From: Paragordius varius
Lineage: Eukaryota; Animalia; Nematomorpha
DNA length: 64,000 nucleotides
Reading direction: 5' to 3'
NCBI GenBank assembly: GCA_964247055.1
Contig: OZ176051.1
Span: 11,098,001 to 11,162,000 of the forward strand
Shown here piece after piece: positions 35,977-48,086 of this stretch (position 1 is its first letter; each line of letters starts with the position of its first letter). Position numbers and translations under genes: made by a program. The notes beneath the pieces were generated by a model. The model did not search any database. It saw only the letters and a list, made by a program, of their open reading frames with translations, and was not told where the DNA came from.

Positions 35977-38900
35977 ATGGCTGAAATAAACGGGATTCAA
36001 AATTTAACACTCAGTAATTTTTAAACTAAACATAGGTGAATTATACACATCTGAAAGCCGTGGAAACGACGATGAAGGCGATGGTACATTTAAAAAGCCC
36101 TTTAAAACCGTATTAAAGGTAAATTTTATATGTTTTACTCATATCTCTAAATACTGATAGATAGTTTTTAAGAGCATACTAACAACTATGCTTTCGAATT
36201 TACAATTTTTATATTAATATACCACTTTTTTATCTTTGACACAACCAAAATGTTAAAAAACATCACGATGCCGACATCGTTAGACCCGTCATGCCATTTA
36301 ATTATTTATTTGCTCCTGAAGTTAATTTATTTAAATGATTAATTTTTATTGAGTTTGATGTTACAATGATCATTGATGCAACAGCAAACTTTTGTTGTTC
36401 TAATTTACCTTATTTGGTTTAAATATTTTTTTTGAATTTTAAAAAATATAATACTTTTTCCGCGTTGGATAAAATGCGGCTTCTTGCGGGTTTAATATTT
36501 TCAAACCATGGCCTACAGGGATGAGGCCCAAACTGATATTTTCTGGAGATTTTGCAAAAATAATGCTTTTATATATATTAGGTTATAGTGGTATTTACCT
36601 CACTATGAATAAATTACGAATATTATAAAACAAGGGTCAAGCCATTTTTTTATACTAATCTAACCTCTTTATATATGTATAACAGCCAAGTATCTGGCAT
36701 TAATATACGTTAATGCTCGCACTGTGGAAATTTTTTTTAAATGGGCTCGAGAAATTTTTTAGTACCAGTGAGGTAGATGCATTATATAAAATAGCGGTTA
36801 AAGACATTCCAGGACAACGCGACTTGCCTACTCTTGATAAATTTTTTATATTAACTTGAGATCTTAGGCACTGTTGGTACCCAATATAATTCCTTAACAA
36901 TTTGTGTAGCAGCCGAGTCAGATTCGAGGTGAAAACAATTATAAAATTCTTTTCCTACCTCCACCTCCACGTGGTGATGTCCGGAAACTTACACGATGTG
37001 TAAGGCCAACGGAGGAGGTCGATTTGAGAAAATCGTAGTCTTTTTAGACATTCTCTAGCCTGGTGCAGCGAATAAGGTACCCTCACCTCTGAGTTAAAGG
37101 GGTTGGTTTATAAGGGCATATAATCCGTAAAACCTTGCCTCAAATTACAAAACCATGAAGAAACGACTTACAAAAATGATTGATGATAATAAAACCTCTA
37201 TTTCAAAACGAAATTTTAATTTTAATATAAATGATAATATATATTATGATAATGCTAGTATACCTATAAATACAAATTACATAAATAATAGAAATAAAAA
37301 TAATTCTAAAACAATAATAAATAAACCAGGTACAAATGAACAACCAAAAATAAAAATAAGATACAATAATCTAAATAAAAACTTCAAATCTATATCGGAA
37401 CCATTTAAAATTGGCTCTTGGAATGTTGGAACAATGGTTAATAAGCAATGGCTGGTAATAGATACGGTGCGAAACTTAGATTTAAACATATGCTGTTTAC
37501 AAGAAACTCGATATAAAAATGCAGGTATAAAACACTTTGATGGTTATTCATTACTATACCAAGGTGGGAACAAAGGACAATCTGGCGTCGCTATAATGAT
37601 GAAAGAAACACACCGACAAAACCTAATTACCGTGACCCGGCACAGTGATAGAATTATTTAAGCTAGAATGATATACAACAAATTGATCCTCAATGTTATT
37701 TCCGTATATGCACCCCAAAAAGGCTTGCCCGATAAATGCAAGCTGGATTTTTGGGATCAGCTCTATCAAATATGTTCCAATATACCCGAAACAGACTGTA
37801 TAATGATTGGAGGAGATTTAAATGCACATGTTGGAAGCAGCGAAGGTTTTTCTGGTATACATGGAGGATACAACTTTGATAATCGGGACAAAGAAGGAGA
37901 AAATGTCTTAGAATTCTGTGCAGCTCAGCGACTACAGTTAGCAAACACTTTATTCACCAAAAGCAAAAATAAACTGATTACATACACTTCTGGCAATAAT
38001 AATACAACAATAGACTACATCCTAACTAGCCAACACATTCGAAAATATCTGGTAAATACAACCACTTATAACTCTGAAACACAGCATAAAGTTTTAACAT
38101 CAATTTTCAAATTTAACTCAAGGCCTTTCAATCATAGAACCAAACCTAAACTTAATATACACAAGTTTAAAAAACCTGATATAATGAATAATTTCAAAAA
38201 GTCGCTTAACTTAAACATTGATAATCTTGACGTTGAAGACTCCTGGCAAAGTCTAAGAAGCAATACGATTGAAAATGTAGAAAAATGGTGTGGTAGAAGA
38301 AAGAGCAAAGCCCAAAAGAAATGGTGGTGGGACGATGCAATTAAGCCATTACTTAAAGAAAAGGCGCGTTTGTATAAAAAATGGAAGAAATCGAAAACAG
38401 AAAACGACAAATCTGAGTATTATAAATACAACAAAAAGGTTCAAAAGGAAATAAATAAATTAATGAATGAAAAGGCTAAAGATACTGCCGATAAATTGGA
38501 AAAGGAAATCCAAAATAATAAAATTTTTAAACATATGAAACTTTACAATAATAACAAAAAAGATATACCAACGATTAAATGTATAAAAGATAATAATAAT
38601 AATTTACAAATACAACCAGAATTAATTAAATCCATATGGCAAAAATATATGGAGCAAAATCTAAACAACCCTTTAACACCCATAATAAATTCTGACCGAG
38701 ATCCCTGTTGTGGCCCATTAAATACATTCACAATACAAGAAATTGAGATTGCTTTAGACCAAATGAAATCAAACAAGGCTTCGGGCCCTAGTGAACTATG
38801 TTTTGATATCATTAAATTAATACCCAATATAACCATGCTTCTAACAAATTTTTTTAACAAAATAATAGTTGAAATGAAAATACCCAAAGACTGGGAAAAA

Positions 38901-40562
38901 AGCATTATATTTCCCATTTTCAAAAATAAAGGAGATATCCTAACCTGTTCCTCATACAGGCCCTTAAAACTTCTTGAACATGGGTTAAAAATTTTTGAAA
39001 TGTGCCTCAAAAATCGTATCGTCCAGCTCATATCAATTAATCCAATGCAATTCGCCTTTTCAGCGGGCAAAAGCACAATCGATCCAATTTTCCTACTCAG
39101 ACAATTACAAGATAAATACCGAGCAAAAGGTCGTAAACTATTCCACCTTTTTGTCGATTTAGAAAAGGCTTACGACTCAGTACCTAGAGCACTAATAATA
39201 GAATCACTGCGCTACAACAACGTAGATGAATATACCATTAAGTTAATTATGTTAATCTACACTAACTCAATCAGTTGTGTTCTTACTCCTGTTGGGAATT
39301 CAGAGTATTTTAGTATAAATACTGGGCTGCATCAGGGATCTGTCCTTAGCCCACTTCTTTTTATAGCTATAATTGATTACATAACAAAAGATATGAGAGA
39401 AGGTCTGCCTTATGAAATTCTTTATGCAGACGACCTCATAATTACTGCAGAAGATATTTCAATACTCGAAAATAAATATCTTATATGGTCAAAACAATTA
39501 CATAAATACGGTCTTAAAATCAATACAAACAAAACTAAAATTCTAATCACAGGAGATGAACATAAAACTATAAAGTTCCCATGCCCAGTGTGCACCACTG
39601 AGGTAAAACTAAACTCACTTTGTTGTACAAAATGCAGAAATTGGGTCCATAAAAAATGTTCCAACATAAAAGGAAAGTTAATTAATAATAATAATTTCAT
39701 CTGCACACCATGTGCTTCATCAATACCACTGCCAATACCGAATTCCCGTACTTTAAACTTTAATGGAGATAAACTAGAAGTGGTAACATCGTTTCCATAT
39801 CTGGGCGATTATATAGCATCTGATGGTTCTTTGAGGGATGCCATTTCTCATAGAATCAGACAAGGATGGGCCAAATTCAATCAATTAAAATATATTTTAA
39901 CTAATAAAAATATCAAATCAAATCACAAGATAAAGATTTACAAAATGGGAATAAGACCAGCTATGACATACGCTACAGAAACCTGGGCCCTTACAGCAAC
40001 AGACCTAAATAGACTTACTAGAGCTGAAAATCACATGCTCAAAATCTGCAACAATAATTTTGATAATACCATAGAAGAAGATGAACCCATAGCTCTATTC
40101 ATCCAGCGCAATCGATTGCGATATTACGGACATATTCAACGTATGAATTCCGATAACTGGGTCCAAAAAATACAACATTTAAATATACCCGGCCCAAACA
40201 GAAAAGGCCGCCCTAAGCTCACATGGTCCAAACAGCTGACCCAAGATCTATCACACTTCAATATTGAACACGAACAAGTCTTTGATAGGACATTGTTCAG
40301 GAAGTTGGTGCATGGAAACCCCAGATACCCTGGGACCTAAAATGAATGGATGGATCTTTAGAAATGTCTAAGTTTATTGAGAAACACAGCCCTTAAAAAT
40401 TATAAATTTACACTATTTATTGGTCTATATGTTAGCCATTTTCGTTCAAGAAAAAATTTTATAACGACAATTTTCACCTAATCAACTCATTGCATCAATT
40501 CAGTCTAAGTTCATTTTATGCAACAAAATCATAACTACATTTCTAAACTTGACACACTATGA

Positions 40563-40597
<35 letters not shown>

Positions 40598-42235
40598 CAT
40601 AATTATTTAGGCAATGTTATGGGCCGGAGATGAGCCCTTCCCCTCAATCTATGTCGATGGAAAAAAAGATGGAACGGAATCGGTTAATTTTTAATAATTT
40701 ATGATATTTAAATGTTAATTAAATAATATTTTTATTACGGTAAAAATTGAAATTTTAATATTAAGTATTTATTAAAAGTAATATTAAAATATGATAGAAT
40801 TTAACTAAAAAAAATATATAAAATGGTTTTATATATATAAATTGTTAATAACTCATGTAATATAAATAAATTTATTAAAATAAAATATTTCGGATCTTAC
40901 TGATTCCTTATTGATTATCTAAAATAATTTTAAATTTACTGTTAATTTTTACGTTAAACCAATGTTGTTATTGGTTTCCCTCTAAGGAAATTTTTTGAAA
41001 TGGGGTTAATATGAGGTATTTCCTCTCTTTTGTTAAAAAGCTCTTCTGTGTTATGCGATTGGATGTAGAACGCCTCTTCTATGGATTTTTAGAAAAAATC
41101 TTTTTGCTTAGCGTGTATTTTATAGACCATTTTATGTTGTGTCAATTGTATGTGCTGATATACTGTTGACTTTGTAAGCTTGATATCTGTTCGTTTACTC
41201 GTATTTGTATTGGCCTTTTTGTTTAAACTATATGACATTTTTTGTTTTATCCATTGCACGGGATTTCATATATGACATTTTTATCTATACCTTTGGGGTG
41301 TTTGGTTAAGAGGGTTAATAGATTGATGCATGGTTTGTATGTTACTAATATGTCTTTACTTGTGAAGCTTTTGTTAGACAGAGTTTTTTTTGTTAGCGTG
41401 TTCGTTTTTTGTTTTTGAAAAAAGATTTTATTAATGCTATCGGTTATCATGTTTTGTGAATAACATTGCTCTAACAAATGTCTTACTTTAAACGTTGTTG
41501 GTTTTATTTGTTTCTTTTCACTCGGGAAAATTAGAGTTTTTTTTATGGGAAGGATGGTTAAAATATGGAGAAAGAAACTGAAAGTTGAATAAGCTTTTTA
41601 AGGTCAGGTTTAAAAAGTTTTTTTTTAATCTTTTGTTCAATTTGTGTTAATAGGCGGTTTTCATTGATATTGTGGACAATTTTGTGATATTGTTATCATC
41701 TATGACCATTACGTAATCTAAGCATCTACAGTAAAGTTTGGCTTGTTGAAATTTAAATTCTGCTCTATTCTCCAATTCTCTAAGACACAATTCGCCTAAT
41801 ATAAGTTAGACCAAAAAGCCTATACAAATACGAATAAACGAACATATAATACCAGCACATAGAGCAGACATTATTGGGCTTCTATAAGTACTCGCCACGC
41901 AAACAGATTTTTTTTTAAGATCCATAGGAGAGGCGCTCTATATCACAGAAGACACCTTAACAAAAGAGAAAAATTACCTTATATCAGTTTCATTACAAAA
42001 AAGTTCTTTAGAGGGAATCCAATATACACTGGTATAATTTAAACAATCAATGGCAGCAAATACGGAAAAAATATTATTTTATTATTATTGTTTATTTTAT
42101 TTCCATTTTTAATATTTTTATATATTTGATAAAGGATCAGTAAAATCCGAAATATTATATTATTTTAATAAGTCCATTTATTTTACACAAGTTATTAACA
42201 ATTTATCCATAAATTAATTCGTCCTCAATCCTAAG

Positions 42236-45200: not shown

Positions 45201-48086
45201 ACTGCAAGTTACCAAATTAATTTAAATTAACGATATTTATATTTTTCTAAACTTTTAGGCTTATTTAACGCAATCCTCACAGTTGTATCTGGAAACGTGC
45301 TGTCCTGGTTTGGGTGACGTTTTTTGCATTATTTCATCTTACCGGGCTGAAAATTCAAAAACACGTCGACATTTAGCTGAGTAACTAATTTAAAAACTAT
45401 TTTCCCTCTATTTTTGTTATCAAAATTTTTAGTAGATAATTTTATTTTTTTGAATATCATCGTTTTAAATTTTTACAAGTATGATAAATATTTTTGCATA
45501 TTTTTTTTTACAAGGTATACTCATATTGAAGCCGAATGCCCGTTCATATCATTCAATGATTTGTTGGATAAATTGGAGGATTTGGTTTGTGATGTGGTGG
45601 ATAGAGTGCTAGCCTCTCCTATCAAAGATATTTTCTATCAAATTAATCCAGTATTTGCGATTAATATTTTTGTTTTCGATTTGTGAAAAAAATTACGTTT
45701 TTATAAAAATTTCTAGATATTATCATAAATTGTAGATAAAACTAAATAGCTTTATAAGTCATATAATTGTATATTGAAACTATAGATAATGAAAATTTTA
45801 CAAAGTTAATTGAAATACGCAATAGGTTTGCTTGCAATTTTTTTCCATAAATCTTAAAATTAATTTAATTGGAGTTACTGGAATTGTGTTTTAATTCAAA
45901 AAAACTATATTATAAAAAAGTAACTATTTGTATAAATACATAGAATTTTGTTCCACCAAAGAGGCCCTTTAAACGCATGAATTATACCGATGCTATAACA
46001 TTCCTTAGGGAACATAATATAACTAAGGATGATGGATCCTACTATGAAATTGGCGAGGTTTTATTGTAGAATTATTTTAAATTTTTTTGACAATAATGTT
46101 ATCACAAACTATTTTTATTAATACAAATTTGATTTAGATAACAGTATTTTGAACACCCTAGTGAAATAATTGTTAACTGGGTCAAATTGCATTAAATTTT
46201 TTGATTATTAGAAAAATTTTTAATGTTATTAGATTATTAATAACATTCATTCTATTCGATGTTAATTAAAATACACTGTATGGTGATCTTGATATGTTTA
46301 CTTGTATAAATTTATTATTTGTTTGCGTATTTTTTGCTTTGATAAAGTTAGGAATTTATAATTTTATACGTGTTAGTCATATATGGTTATTTCAGATTTT
46401 AAGATTATTAAATCAACACTACTGAGATAATAAAAATGTTATTTATATTTGTGAAAGGCGAGCCTATATACTGGACACCATGCTGCAAAAATTTGCATTA
46501 ATCACTATTACTTAGGCGCTTATGTAGTAAATCCATATTTGCTTAATTTATTAGTTTTGTTGGGGCAAATTCATTTAACGGGATTATATTTTTTACATAT
46601 TATATATACATAAATCTATATGCTTTTCTTACAATTTTACTAAGATTTTTGCAAAATTTATCGAATATTGTGTTTTATCATTAAAACCAAATATTGCCAT
46701 AAAGTATATTATATATATTTTCGTGTTAAAAGAGGTTTGAATTATATAGCCGCGTGCCTAAACACAAATTTATTAAACATTATTATAAATTGAAATGATA
46801 AACCTTTGTTACCATGATCCTGTGAATAAATGTTAAGCCACTTGCAAAACCGTTATTTTGAGCAAACACACAACTTTTACAAACTTAAATTTTTTTAACC
46901 ATAAAAAAGCTTTTGGAATTTTATTAGTCCTAGAGATAACAAAAACATAAATGTGATATATAATATTTTTTATGGTGAGTGTAGCTAAGGTAGATGTACA
47001 TAAAATGGTTTTTTAATATAATTTTTATTTTATTATGTTTATAAACTTTTTGTAGGATATTCCTGAAATGCCAGAACGTAAAATGACAGATTTGATAAAT
47101 GAAGTATGTGGTCTTTTATATATTTTAAATTTTTTCATTTATATTTTTGATTTTATGATATTTATTTACAGCCAATACTGTTGTGCCGCTTCCCAGCAAA
47201 CATAAAAGCTTTTTATATGCAAAAATGTCCAGAAGATCCGACCTTTACCGAATCCGTAATAAATTTATATTATACATAAAATAGATCAATTTTGGGATCT
47301 TTTCTACGTTTTGAGACGCTCAATAACAACTGAGTTTTAATTTTTCTTATATGTCGCTTGGCTCGAATTGTATCGATTTTTTGAGCTAATTATCAACTCT
47401 CTCTAAAATATATGTCTTAATAAGAGTTATCCAAGTTTTTCTCAAAATCTTTAAAAATTATTTTTCCCTTTCCATTATTGGGTAAGGAATTTAATTGTGT
47501 TAAGGATTCATTGATTAGTTAATTTTATTTGTCAACTTAACATTAGGTTGATGTATTGATTCCGGGTGTGGGTGAAATTGTGGGCGGTTCTATGAGGATT
47601 TACAATTTTGATGAACTCCTTGCAGGTTATGCTAGGGAAGGGATTGATCCCACACCATATTATTGGTACACTGATCAGGTAAAAAATTCCAAGTATTTTA
47701 ATCATTGCTTACTTTAATTTTTTGAATCATTTTTTTGTAAATATGGAATTAGGAAATTTTATGATAATATTGCATACGTGCAGAAAACTAATTTTGAATA
47801 GCAGCTACCTTTTAACCTTTAAACTTTTAAGTTACGAAATAAGGAATCGATAAAATTGTTCTCAATTTTAATTTAAAACCTGCAAATCTAATGAAATAAA
47901 AAATTTGTTCTATAATTTTATTATTACTATACTATACTGTAATATTCAATATAGAGAAAGTATGGAACTTGCCCCCATGGAGGATATGGTTTAGGTTTTG
48001 AACGTTTCTTAACTTGGCTCCTCAATAGATATCACATTAGAGATGTTACCCTTTATCCAAGGTATGTAGGAAGATGTAAACCCTGA
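35977..48086 (+). CDS. NARS1: Cytoplasmic asparaginyl-tRNA synthetase, 559 aa, 18 exons: 35977-36013, 36036-36118, 40611-40682, 42326-42418, 42997-43086, 43159-43237, 43339-43409, 43528-43614, 43687-43773, 44482-44616, 44845-44922, 45259-45380, 45515-45650, 45944-46057, 47056-47103, 47172-47255, 47547-47678, 47955-48086
   Basis: Continuous phase-consistent frame of 1680 nt. It includes the N-terminal extension ([24 protein letters not shown]), OB fold ([21 protein letters not shown]) and motifs [59 protein letters not shown] and [11 protein letters not shown]. Confidence 0.97.
36802..37015 (+). ncRNA. HDV-like self-cleaving ribozyme in the RTE 5' UTR
   Basis: Nested double pseudoknot: P2 CCTCC 36958-62 / GGAGG 37011-15; P3 ACC 36963-65 / GGT 36973-75; L3 TCCACGT; P1 3' strand GATGTCC 36976-82; P1.1 GG 36983-84 with L3 CC; P4 CTTACAC-GAT-GTGTAAG; J4/2 GCCAAC carrying the expected catalytic C. 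The P1 5' strand is GACATT 36803-08 or GGACAAC 36812-18. Confidence 0.75.
37155..40340 (+). pseudogene. RTE APE-RT ORF (1062 codons) with one in-frame stop
   Basis: Track ORFs 37155-37661 and 37668-40340 are in the same frame and separated only by TAA at 37659-37661 (DRII*ARMIY). Confidence 0.88.
40930..41830 (-). mobile_element. Degenerate Penelope-like element (RT end plus GIY-YIG), antisense in NARS1 intron 3
   Basis: [13 protein letters not shown] resembles the RT YVDD region; KNVIYEIPC and [11 protein letters not shown] resemble the GIY-YIG domain. Confidence 0.6.
42508..42846. mobile_element. hAT-type MITE in NARS1 intron 4
   Basis: TIR TAGGGTTGTGC and an 8-bp TSD GGAATAAC/GAAATAAC (7/8). 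Confidence 0.8.

Follow-up and report, generated by a model that had tools for sequence, protein, structure and literature searches.

A 5′-truncated RTE-like retrotransposon with a most likely inert HDV-like ribozyme core in an AsnRS intron of Paragordius varius

We find that the HDV-like ribozyme motif in intron 2 of a cytoplasmic AsnRS (NARS1-like) gene of Paragordius varius belongs to a retrotransposon copy that has lost its 5′ end. This copy, at 36953-40355 of the window (the whole 64-kb stretch of DNA that was analysed), is very probably a recent, dead, 5′-truncated member of an RTE-like family whose elements are headed by a ribozyme, and the motif in the copy itself is most likely inert. 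A truncation of 11 nt, at integration or afterwards, took away J1/2 together with the P1 5′ strand and the scissile phosphate and left the catalytic core in place. An earlier note on this DNA had taken the motif for a self-cleaving ribozyme that acts on the pre-mRNA of an essential synthetase, a claim that is not supported.

The element and its host gene

The features of the region are listed in Table 1. The position of the insertion in sense within intron 2 of a NARS1-like gene, as originally described, is well supported, both by the putative exon-intron structure, for which exons 1 and 2 were joined in a script to test the reading frame, and by the exons downstream. PF00152 matches lie at 45256-45381 and 47952-48062 (both +), single exons, searched one by one, also match PF00152, and the best structural matches of the downstream exons are to cytoplasmic asparagine-tRNA ligase (8tc7, 5xix and 8tc8; E 5e-16 and 1e-20). 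The retrotransposon takes up 3,403 nt of the intron and begins 835 nt past the donor.

Table 1. Features of the AsnRS intron 2 region and of the retrotransposon copy within it (window coordinates)
Feature	Position	Strand	Basis or remark
AsnRS exon 1, ATG at 35977	35977-36013	+	Inferred gene model
GT..AG micro-intron, 22 nt	36014-36035	+	Frame stays open across it
AsnRS exon 2	36036-36118	+	GTAAAT donor at 36119
Intron 2, 4,492 nt	36119-40610	+	Inferred gene model
Candidate P1 5′ strands AGACAUU (36802) and GGACAAC (36812)	36802-36818	+	In unique intron sequence; chance matches
Retrotransposon copy, 5′-truncated (nt 12 to end), of a 3.4-kb single-ORF APE+RT(+PHD-like) non-LTR element, RTE-like by architecture	36953-40355	+	Near-identical to about 15 copies in the genome
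HDV-like (drz-Agam-1-type) ribozyme core without P1 5′ strand and J1/2	36953-37018	+	RF01787, 30.2 bits
P2 5′ strand CCU-A-CCUCC, bulged A36957	36954-36962	+	Pairs with 37011-37018
P3, ACC (36963-36965) / GGU (36973-36975)	36963-36975	+	Aligns to P3/L3 of the Rfam model
L3 UCCACGU, inside P3	36966-36972	+	P1.1 pairs with C36967 and C36968
P1 3′ strand GAUGUCC, orphaned in this copy	36976-36982	+	Perfect partner heads the full-length copies (nt 1-7)
P1.1 GG	36983-36984	+	GG at the same position in 20/20 parsed ribozymes
P4 hairpin CUUACAC-GAU-GUGUAAG, 7 bp	36988-37004	+	Read directly off the sequence
J4/2 GCCAAC	37005-37010	+	C37006 aligns to the conserved C of RF01787 J4/2 'CuaA'
P2 3′ strand GGAGGAGG	37011-37018	+	Complementary to 36954-36962
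Element ORF (APE-RT-PHD-like), one frame	37155-40340	+	ORFs 37155-37661 and 37668-40340 in the same frame
3′ UTR, 15 nt, ending in ATGG/GGAT tetranucleotide repeats	40341-40355	+	In other copies further GGAT units follow, variable in number, up to the point where flanks diverge
AsnRS exon 3, 3′ end approximate	40611-40682	+	AG acceptor, then open frame

The limits of the element are set by its relatives. In searches of the same genome the homology among copies begins at the equivalent of window position 36953 and stops at 40355, the genomic copies reaching 100% identity over their common 5′ part, and the window copy is 99.7% identical to two of them (L004 and L007) over 1.7 kb. The element frame carries Exo_endo_phos / Exo_endo_phos_2, RVT_1 and PHD matches in Pfam, so that an N-terminal APE endonuclease and an RT are encoded in a single ORF, and with its missing nucleotides the full-length element measures about 3,414 nt and ends in a very short, repeat-tailed 3′ UTR. 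A length of about 3.3 kb and a short 3′ UTR ending in tandem repeats, not poly(A), are reportedly typical of RTE elements, and by this architecture (size, single APE+RT ORF, repeat-tailed 3′ end) the element fits an RTE-type LINE. Its nearest proteins are about 35% identical, some 1,000-1,100 aa long, and lie on 3-4-kb contigs; four contigs encoding such homologues (L090-L093) gave no HDV-like ribozyme match at E<=1. One of these contigs gave a twister match.

An in-frame stop at 37662-37664 interrupts the ORF of the window copy, at a site where both other copies compared (L007 and L011) have a sense codon. Young, 5′-truncated and stop-bearing, the window copy is an ordinary dead LINE insertion.

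The ribozyme core and its missing 5′ end

All of the core elements that had been described in the earlier note are present and in the right order: P2, P3, L3, the P1 3′ strand, P1.1, P4, and a J4/2 with a candidate catalytic C, together spanning 36954-37018. The assignment of an HDV-like motif, here of the drz-Agam-1 type, to the 5′ end of a LINE holds, the motif heading the 3.4-kb APE+RT retrotransposon, and the choice of C37006 as the putative catalytic cytosine agrees with its alignment under the conserved C of RF01787. A permissive Rfam scan of 36400-37400 returned RF01787 (drz-agam-1) at 36936-37018 (+) with E 8e-4 as the sole meaningful match, and the score of 30.2 bits lies below the gathering score of that model, which is 37 bits; at gathering thresholds there are no Rfam matches anywhere in the window. 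The alignment shows where the model departs from the copy, in that model positions 1-12, which represent the P1 5′ strand and J1/2, fall on unrelated AU-rich sequence.

The reason becomes apparent when the sequence 5′ of the shared core is printed for all copies. Five young copies (L004, L006, L007, L008 and L010) and an older one (L018) run 11 nt further than the window copy, reading GGACATCAAAA, and the flanks of these full-length copies diverge immediately 5′ of the 11 nt; among the copies examined none shares sequence beyond G1. Directly before the equivalent of 36953 the full-length copies thus begin GGACAUC-AAAA, and GGACAUC is the perfect 7-bp Watson-Crick partner of GAUGUCC, the P1 3′ strand. 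Other copies are short by 1-11 nt at the 5′ end (AGACATC.., ACATC.., CAAAA, AAAA), and in the window copy, which begins at element nt 12, all 11 terminal nucleotides are missing. Three of the full copies (L006, L007 and L008), which start GGACAUCAAAA, align to RF01787 from model position 1 with 39.6, 41.2 and 44.7 bits, and the family accordingly exceeds the gathering score that the window copy misses. A P1 helix of 6-7 bp with its 5′ strand starting at the cleavage site G1 can be drawn for the full copies and is absent from the window copy.

The integration events mark G1 as well: the target-site duplications of three full copies, 12, 12 and 15 bp long, abut it exactly. The transposed RNA therefore starts with the base that lies immediately 3′ of the predicted scissile bond, and the predicted cleavage site coincides with element nt 1 in the full copies of this family (family A) and of a second family in the genome (family B, see below).

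We also considered whether the truncation might be an artefact of assembly, the copy really being full-length with GGACAUCAAAA present and its 5′ junction having been mis-assembled or collapsed within the repeat. The element is indeed a multi-copy repeat at 99-100% identity, and when assembled contigs of DNA runs are aligned to the window, loose ends that read ...GGACATCAAAA accumulate at 36953. These loose ends are, however, explained by the other genomic copies, and one contig (run X1) covers 36705-36973 with zero differences and joins the unique flank directly to TCCTACC. Variable truncation by 1-11 nt at the 5′ end is moreover seen in many independent copies, and we regard an artefact as extremely unlikely. 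The truncated junction is nonetheless supported and not proven, because the contig that crosses it enters the repeat by only 21 nt, under our 31-nt rule for bridging. The same contigs showed no empty-site allele.

Candidate P1 strands upstream of the element

The earlier note had supplied the missing half of P1 from 36802-36818, with a J1/2 of 140-150 nt. Both AGACAUU at 36802 and GGACAAC at 36812 pair at six of seven positions with GAUGUCC, in the latter case by Watson-Crick pairs, and a further heptamer, CGACAUC at 36272, would form a helix of 6 bp. Such a surrogate P1 is possible in principle, because in the silkmoth R2 ribozymes function although their J1/2 loops measure 216-498 nt and their P1 strand is drawn from the 28S flank (PMC3774820). 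The core in the window copy might then recruit AGACAUU or GGACAAC and cut a fraction of the AsnRS pre-mRNAs in competition with splicing, a reading with which the intact core, the presence of C37006, the two 6/7 sites upstream and the R2 precedent are all compatible.

Partial matches of this quality are nevertheless expected by chance. The 253 nt upstream contain three sites that pair 6/7 with GAUGUCC, and 2,000 dinucleotide-preserving shuffles contain 2.7 on average, 79% of the shuffles having at least two; the rest of the window has 2.2 such sites per 253 nt. A perfect 7-mer partner is absent from the 830 nt back to exon 2. Both candidates are mismatched, by an A-C first pair or by an internal A-A, and their duplexes, at -5.5 and -6.2 kcal/mol, are 3-4 kcal/mol less stable than that with the native strand, at -9.4 kcal/mol. 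When 36795-37020 is folded to minimum free energy, GAUGUCC finds a local partner within 36915-36962 and leaves the candidates unpaired to it. HDV-like ribozymes seldom have even one mismatch in P1, and in the R2 ribozyme of the horseshoe crab and the ribozymes of sunflower and Anopheles funestus a P1 mismatch is linked to absent cleavage in vitro (PMC3774820). The likeness to R2 is also limited. In both arrangements the P1 5′ strand lies outside the element and J1/2 would be long, hundreds of nucleotides in R2, but R2 invariably has one conserved 28S site as its flank, with which pairing has co-evolved, whereas the flank here is random intron and its pairing imperfect and at chance level. Since the candidate sites lie in unique flank, outside the element, selection has not shaped them.

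We therefore find a P1 5′ strand at 36802-36818 unsupported, given the chance frequency of such sites, the weaker duplexes and the loss of the native GGACAUC, and because the native strand and its AAAA are absent and the upstream candidates are at chance level we place the start of the feature at 36953, not at 36802. Neither the upstream strand nor its 140-150-nt J1/2 could be confirmed, cleavage of the host pre-mRNA through them lacks support, and the 'imperfect P1' is better regarded as a chance match. The suggestion that its imperfection is an attenuation making the insertion tolerable is likewise better read as plain loss of the substrate strand by an 11-nt truncation. That the core recruits one of the two nearer strands and competes with splicing we consider very unlikely; equally improbable in our view is that the orphan core captures any one of the three imperfect heptamers, at 36812, 36802 or 36272, and cuts a small fraction of AsnRS pre-mRNA, and measurable cleavage of any degree through a surrogate P1 in this copy would come as a considerable surprise. 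Were it to occur, nature would have turned a beheaded LINE ribozyme against host sequence, where it would tune the output of an essential gene.

Ribozyme families and covariation

The genome contains many relatives of the window motif. A genome-wide RF01787 search yielded at least 53 matches with a score, of which 19 exceed the gathering score, and these ribozymes fall into three groups, namely family A (that of the window copy), family B, and a variant, B2. Because a MAFFT alignment of families A and B misaligned the 3′ half, helices were parsed by position in a script, for a set of 20 distinct ribozyme sequences. The family A ribozyme is a compact 77 nt, with P1 GGACAUC/GAUGUCC, J1/2 AAAAU, a P2 with a bulged A, P3 ACC/GGU, L3 UCCACGU, P1.1, a 7-bp P4 and J4/2 GCCAAC. 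Family B is an abundant 70-nt form with P1 GGCCAAC/GUUGGCY, P2 CCU-A-UUGCC/GGCAAAGG, P4 GCAU-GAAA-AUGC and J4/2 GCUAAC; its flanks, too, diverge exactly 5′ of G1, and an APE-like frame lies downstream of one copy. Variant B2 has P2 CCU-A-CUGCU/AGCAGAGG and P4 UCACC-UUU-GGUGA.

Comparison of A, B and B2 reveals compensatory changes in P1 (pair 3, C-G/A-U; pair 6, A-U/U-A) and changes on both sides of P2 pairs 1, 4, 5, 6 and 8, the bulged A of P2 being conserved in all three. P3 is canonically paired in all 20 sequences and reads ACC/GGU in 19 of them, the P1.1 GG is invariant, and P4 has been swapped for unrelated hairpins among the three groups. Covariation among family copies, whose absence would have counted against a ribozyme, is thus found in P1, P2 and P4, and because of these compensatory changes the fold is sound at the level of the family. 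This covariation is support for the family and not for the window copy.

Discussion

Judged from their sequences, full-length members of the family would be catalytically active and the window copy inactive. Elements of the family, without a promoter of their own, would be transcribed by read-through from the host, and in a full-length copy the ribozyme at the 5′ end would cut just 5′ of G1, freeing the element RNA from the read-through transcript; we favor this for the family because the G1 start is defined by target-site duplications in this genome. Ribozyme release of element RNA is a known role in RTE, baggins, R2 and L1Tc elements. In the window copy P1 is gone and the nested double pseudoknot would be unable to form around a substrate, and since both the P1 5′ strand and the scissile site are missing the motif is most likely inert in the AsnRS pre-mRNA. 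Intron 2 would simply be spliced out along with its 3.4-kb passenger.

The truncated core could in principle have kept another function, either a non-catalytic one as a structured or IRES-like RNA, or as a ribozyme acting in trans on RNAs that carry GGACAUC. P2, P3 and P4 are intact, and a part in translation initiation has been suggested for HDV-like folds that head LINEs (PMC6765202), but the ORF behind this core is broken by an in-frame stop, and nothing shows selection on the window copy, a young insertion within an intron that is still 99.7% identical to its relatives. We would give such a retained role hardly any weight, and favor an inert motif.

Among known ribozymes a close counterpart is drz-Agam-1 of Anopheles gambiae (RF01787), which shares the nested double-pseudoknot layout and has nearly the same letters in its core; family A resembles it in its J1/2 AAAAU, a P2 that starts CCU, P3 ACC/GGU, L3 UCCnCGU, and the GG that comes after the P1 3′ strand. 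It differs in P1, where paired changes set it apart from the model consensus GGCUGAC/GUCGGCC (in an alignment read by eye), in the unrelated sequence of P4, in the bulged A of the family A P2 and in the host animal, and the window copy differs further in being without P1 and under the threshold. The mammalian CPEB3 ribozyme offers a likeness of position, as it is also an HDV-like motif in sense within a host-gene intron. The CPEB3 ribozyme is described in the literature as complete, conserved and single-copy, whereas the window motif belongs to a repeat, of which it is a young and beheaded copy.

At the level of the element, an analogy is provided by the RTE and baggins ribozymes. In what PMC6765202 relates of Ruminski et al. 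2011, the ribozyme is the first part of a promoter-less LINE, the cleavage site is element nt 1, and intronic elements rely on host read-through; the same review describes RTE and baggins elements with HDV-like ribozymes as transcribed from host introns. The window insertion is also in sense and intronic, but because it is 5′-truncated the release mechanism cannot operate in it, and membership in the RTE clade is judged here from architecture only. The element is a ribozyme-headed, RTE-like LINE of a known kind, represented in this intron by a 5′-truncated, probably inert copy.

For the AsnRS gene the result is mainly a correction, and the picture of an essential synthetase gene in which splicing races self-cleavage is unsupported here. 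More generally, finding a ribozyme-like core in a host intron does not by itself argue for cleavage of the host transcript; the P1 strand and the cleavage site must be present too, and comparing the 5′ ends of sister copies quickly settles whether they are. At the level of the family, the 5′ ends bounded by target-site duplications, the covariation and the Rfam scores above the gathering threshold make these elements a well-supported example of LINE RNAs that would be cut free by their own ribozyme, and they show a drz-Agam-1-type core outside the insects.

Other ribozymes and partly matching loci in the genome

Ribozymes of a second HDV-like family (family B, 70 nt) are commoner than those of the window's own family, are present at locus L056 and at about 20 other loci (L047-L075), and occupy the precise 5′ end of a different APE-encoding element of the same genome. 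In a variant, B2 (L069 and L074), P4 is unlike that of family B and P2 is compensated. At L060 the incomplete 5′ portion of a second ribozyme (..CCAAAGTCCTATTGCCACCTCCC) lies directly 5′ of a complete family B ribozyme, an arrangement that may represent a tandem or nested insertion.

At least eight loci (L023-L030, e.g. G000:C10:2791634-2791740) match only window positions 37024-37132, the 5′ UTR immediately downstream of the ribozyme, with 85–86% identity. For the four copies examined, the upstream sequence is unlike that of the window yet conserved between them, and neither of the two loci tested, L023 and L028, contains an HDV-like match at E≤0.1. A relative that is chimeric or non-autonomous is one possible explanation for these loci.

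Locations of additional features
Feature	Location	Strand	Details
Putative AsnRS micro-intron	window 36014-36035		22 nt, GT..AG, between exons 1 and 2; from reading frame only
Family B ribozyme	L056:1501-1570	+	P1 GGCCAAC/GUUGGCY; P4 GCAU-GAAA-AUGC
Full family B ribozyme with a partial second ribozyme directly 5′ of it	G000:C2:12934742-12934811 (L060)	-	
Type-P1 twister match (RF03160)	L091:76-144	+	51 bits, under gathering score of 67.2; E 4.6e-9

Synthetase genes

Codon 13 of the AsnRS gene appears, from the reading frame, to be split by the micro-intron. Elsewhere in the genome, about 18 separate exon-sized class II aaRS (PF00152) matches extend across 150 kb (G000:C9:4362872-4508799, minus strand), and because the same profile segments recur among them, they suggest that copies or fragments of synthetase genes are arranged here in tandem.

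A possible twister ribozyme in a related LINE

The marine metagenome contig ERZ908267 (L091) encodes a LINE protein 34% identical to that of the window, and its twister match lies 5′ of the LINE ORF; the class of self-cleaving ribozyme at this position may therefore differ between related elements.
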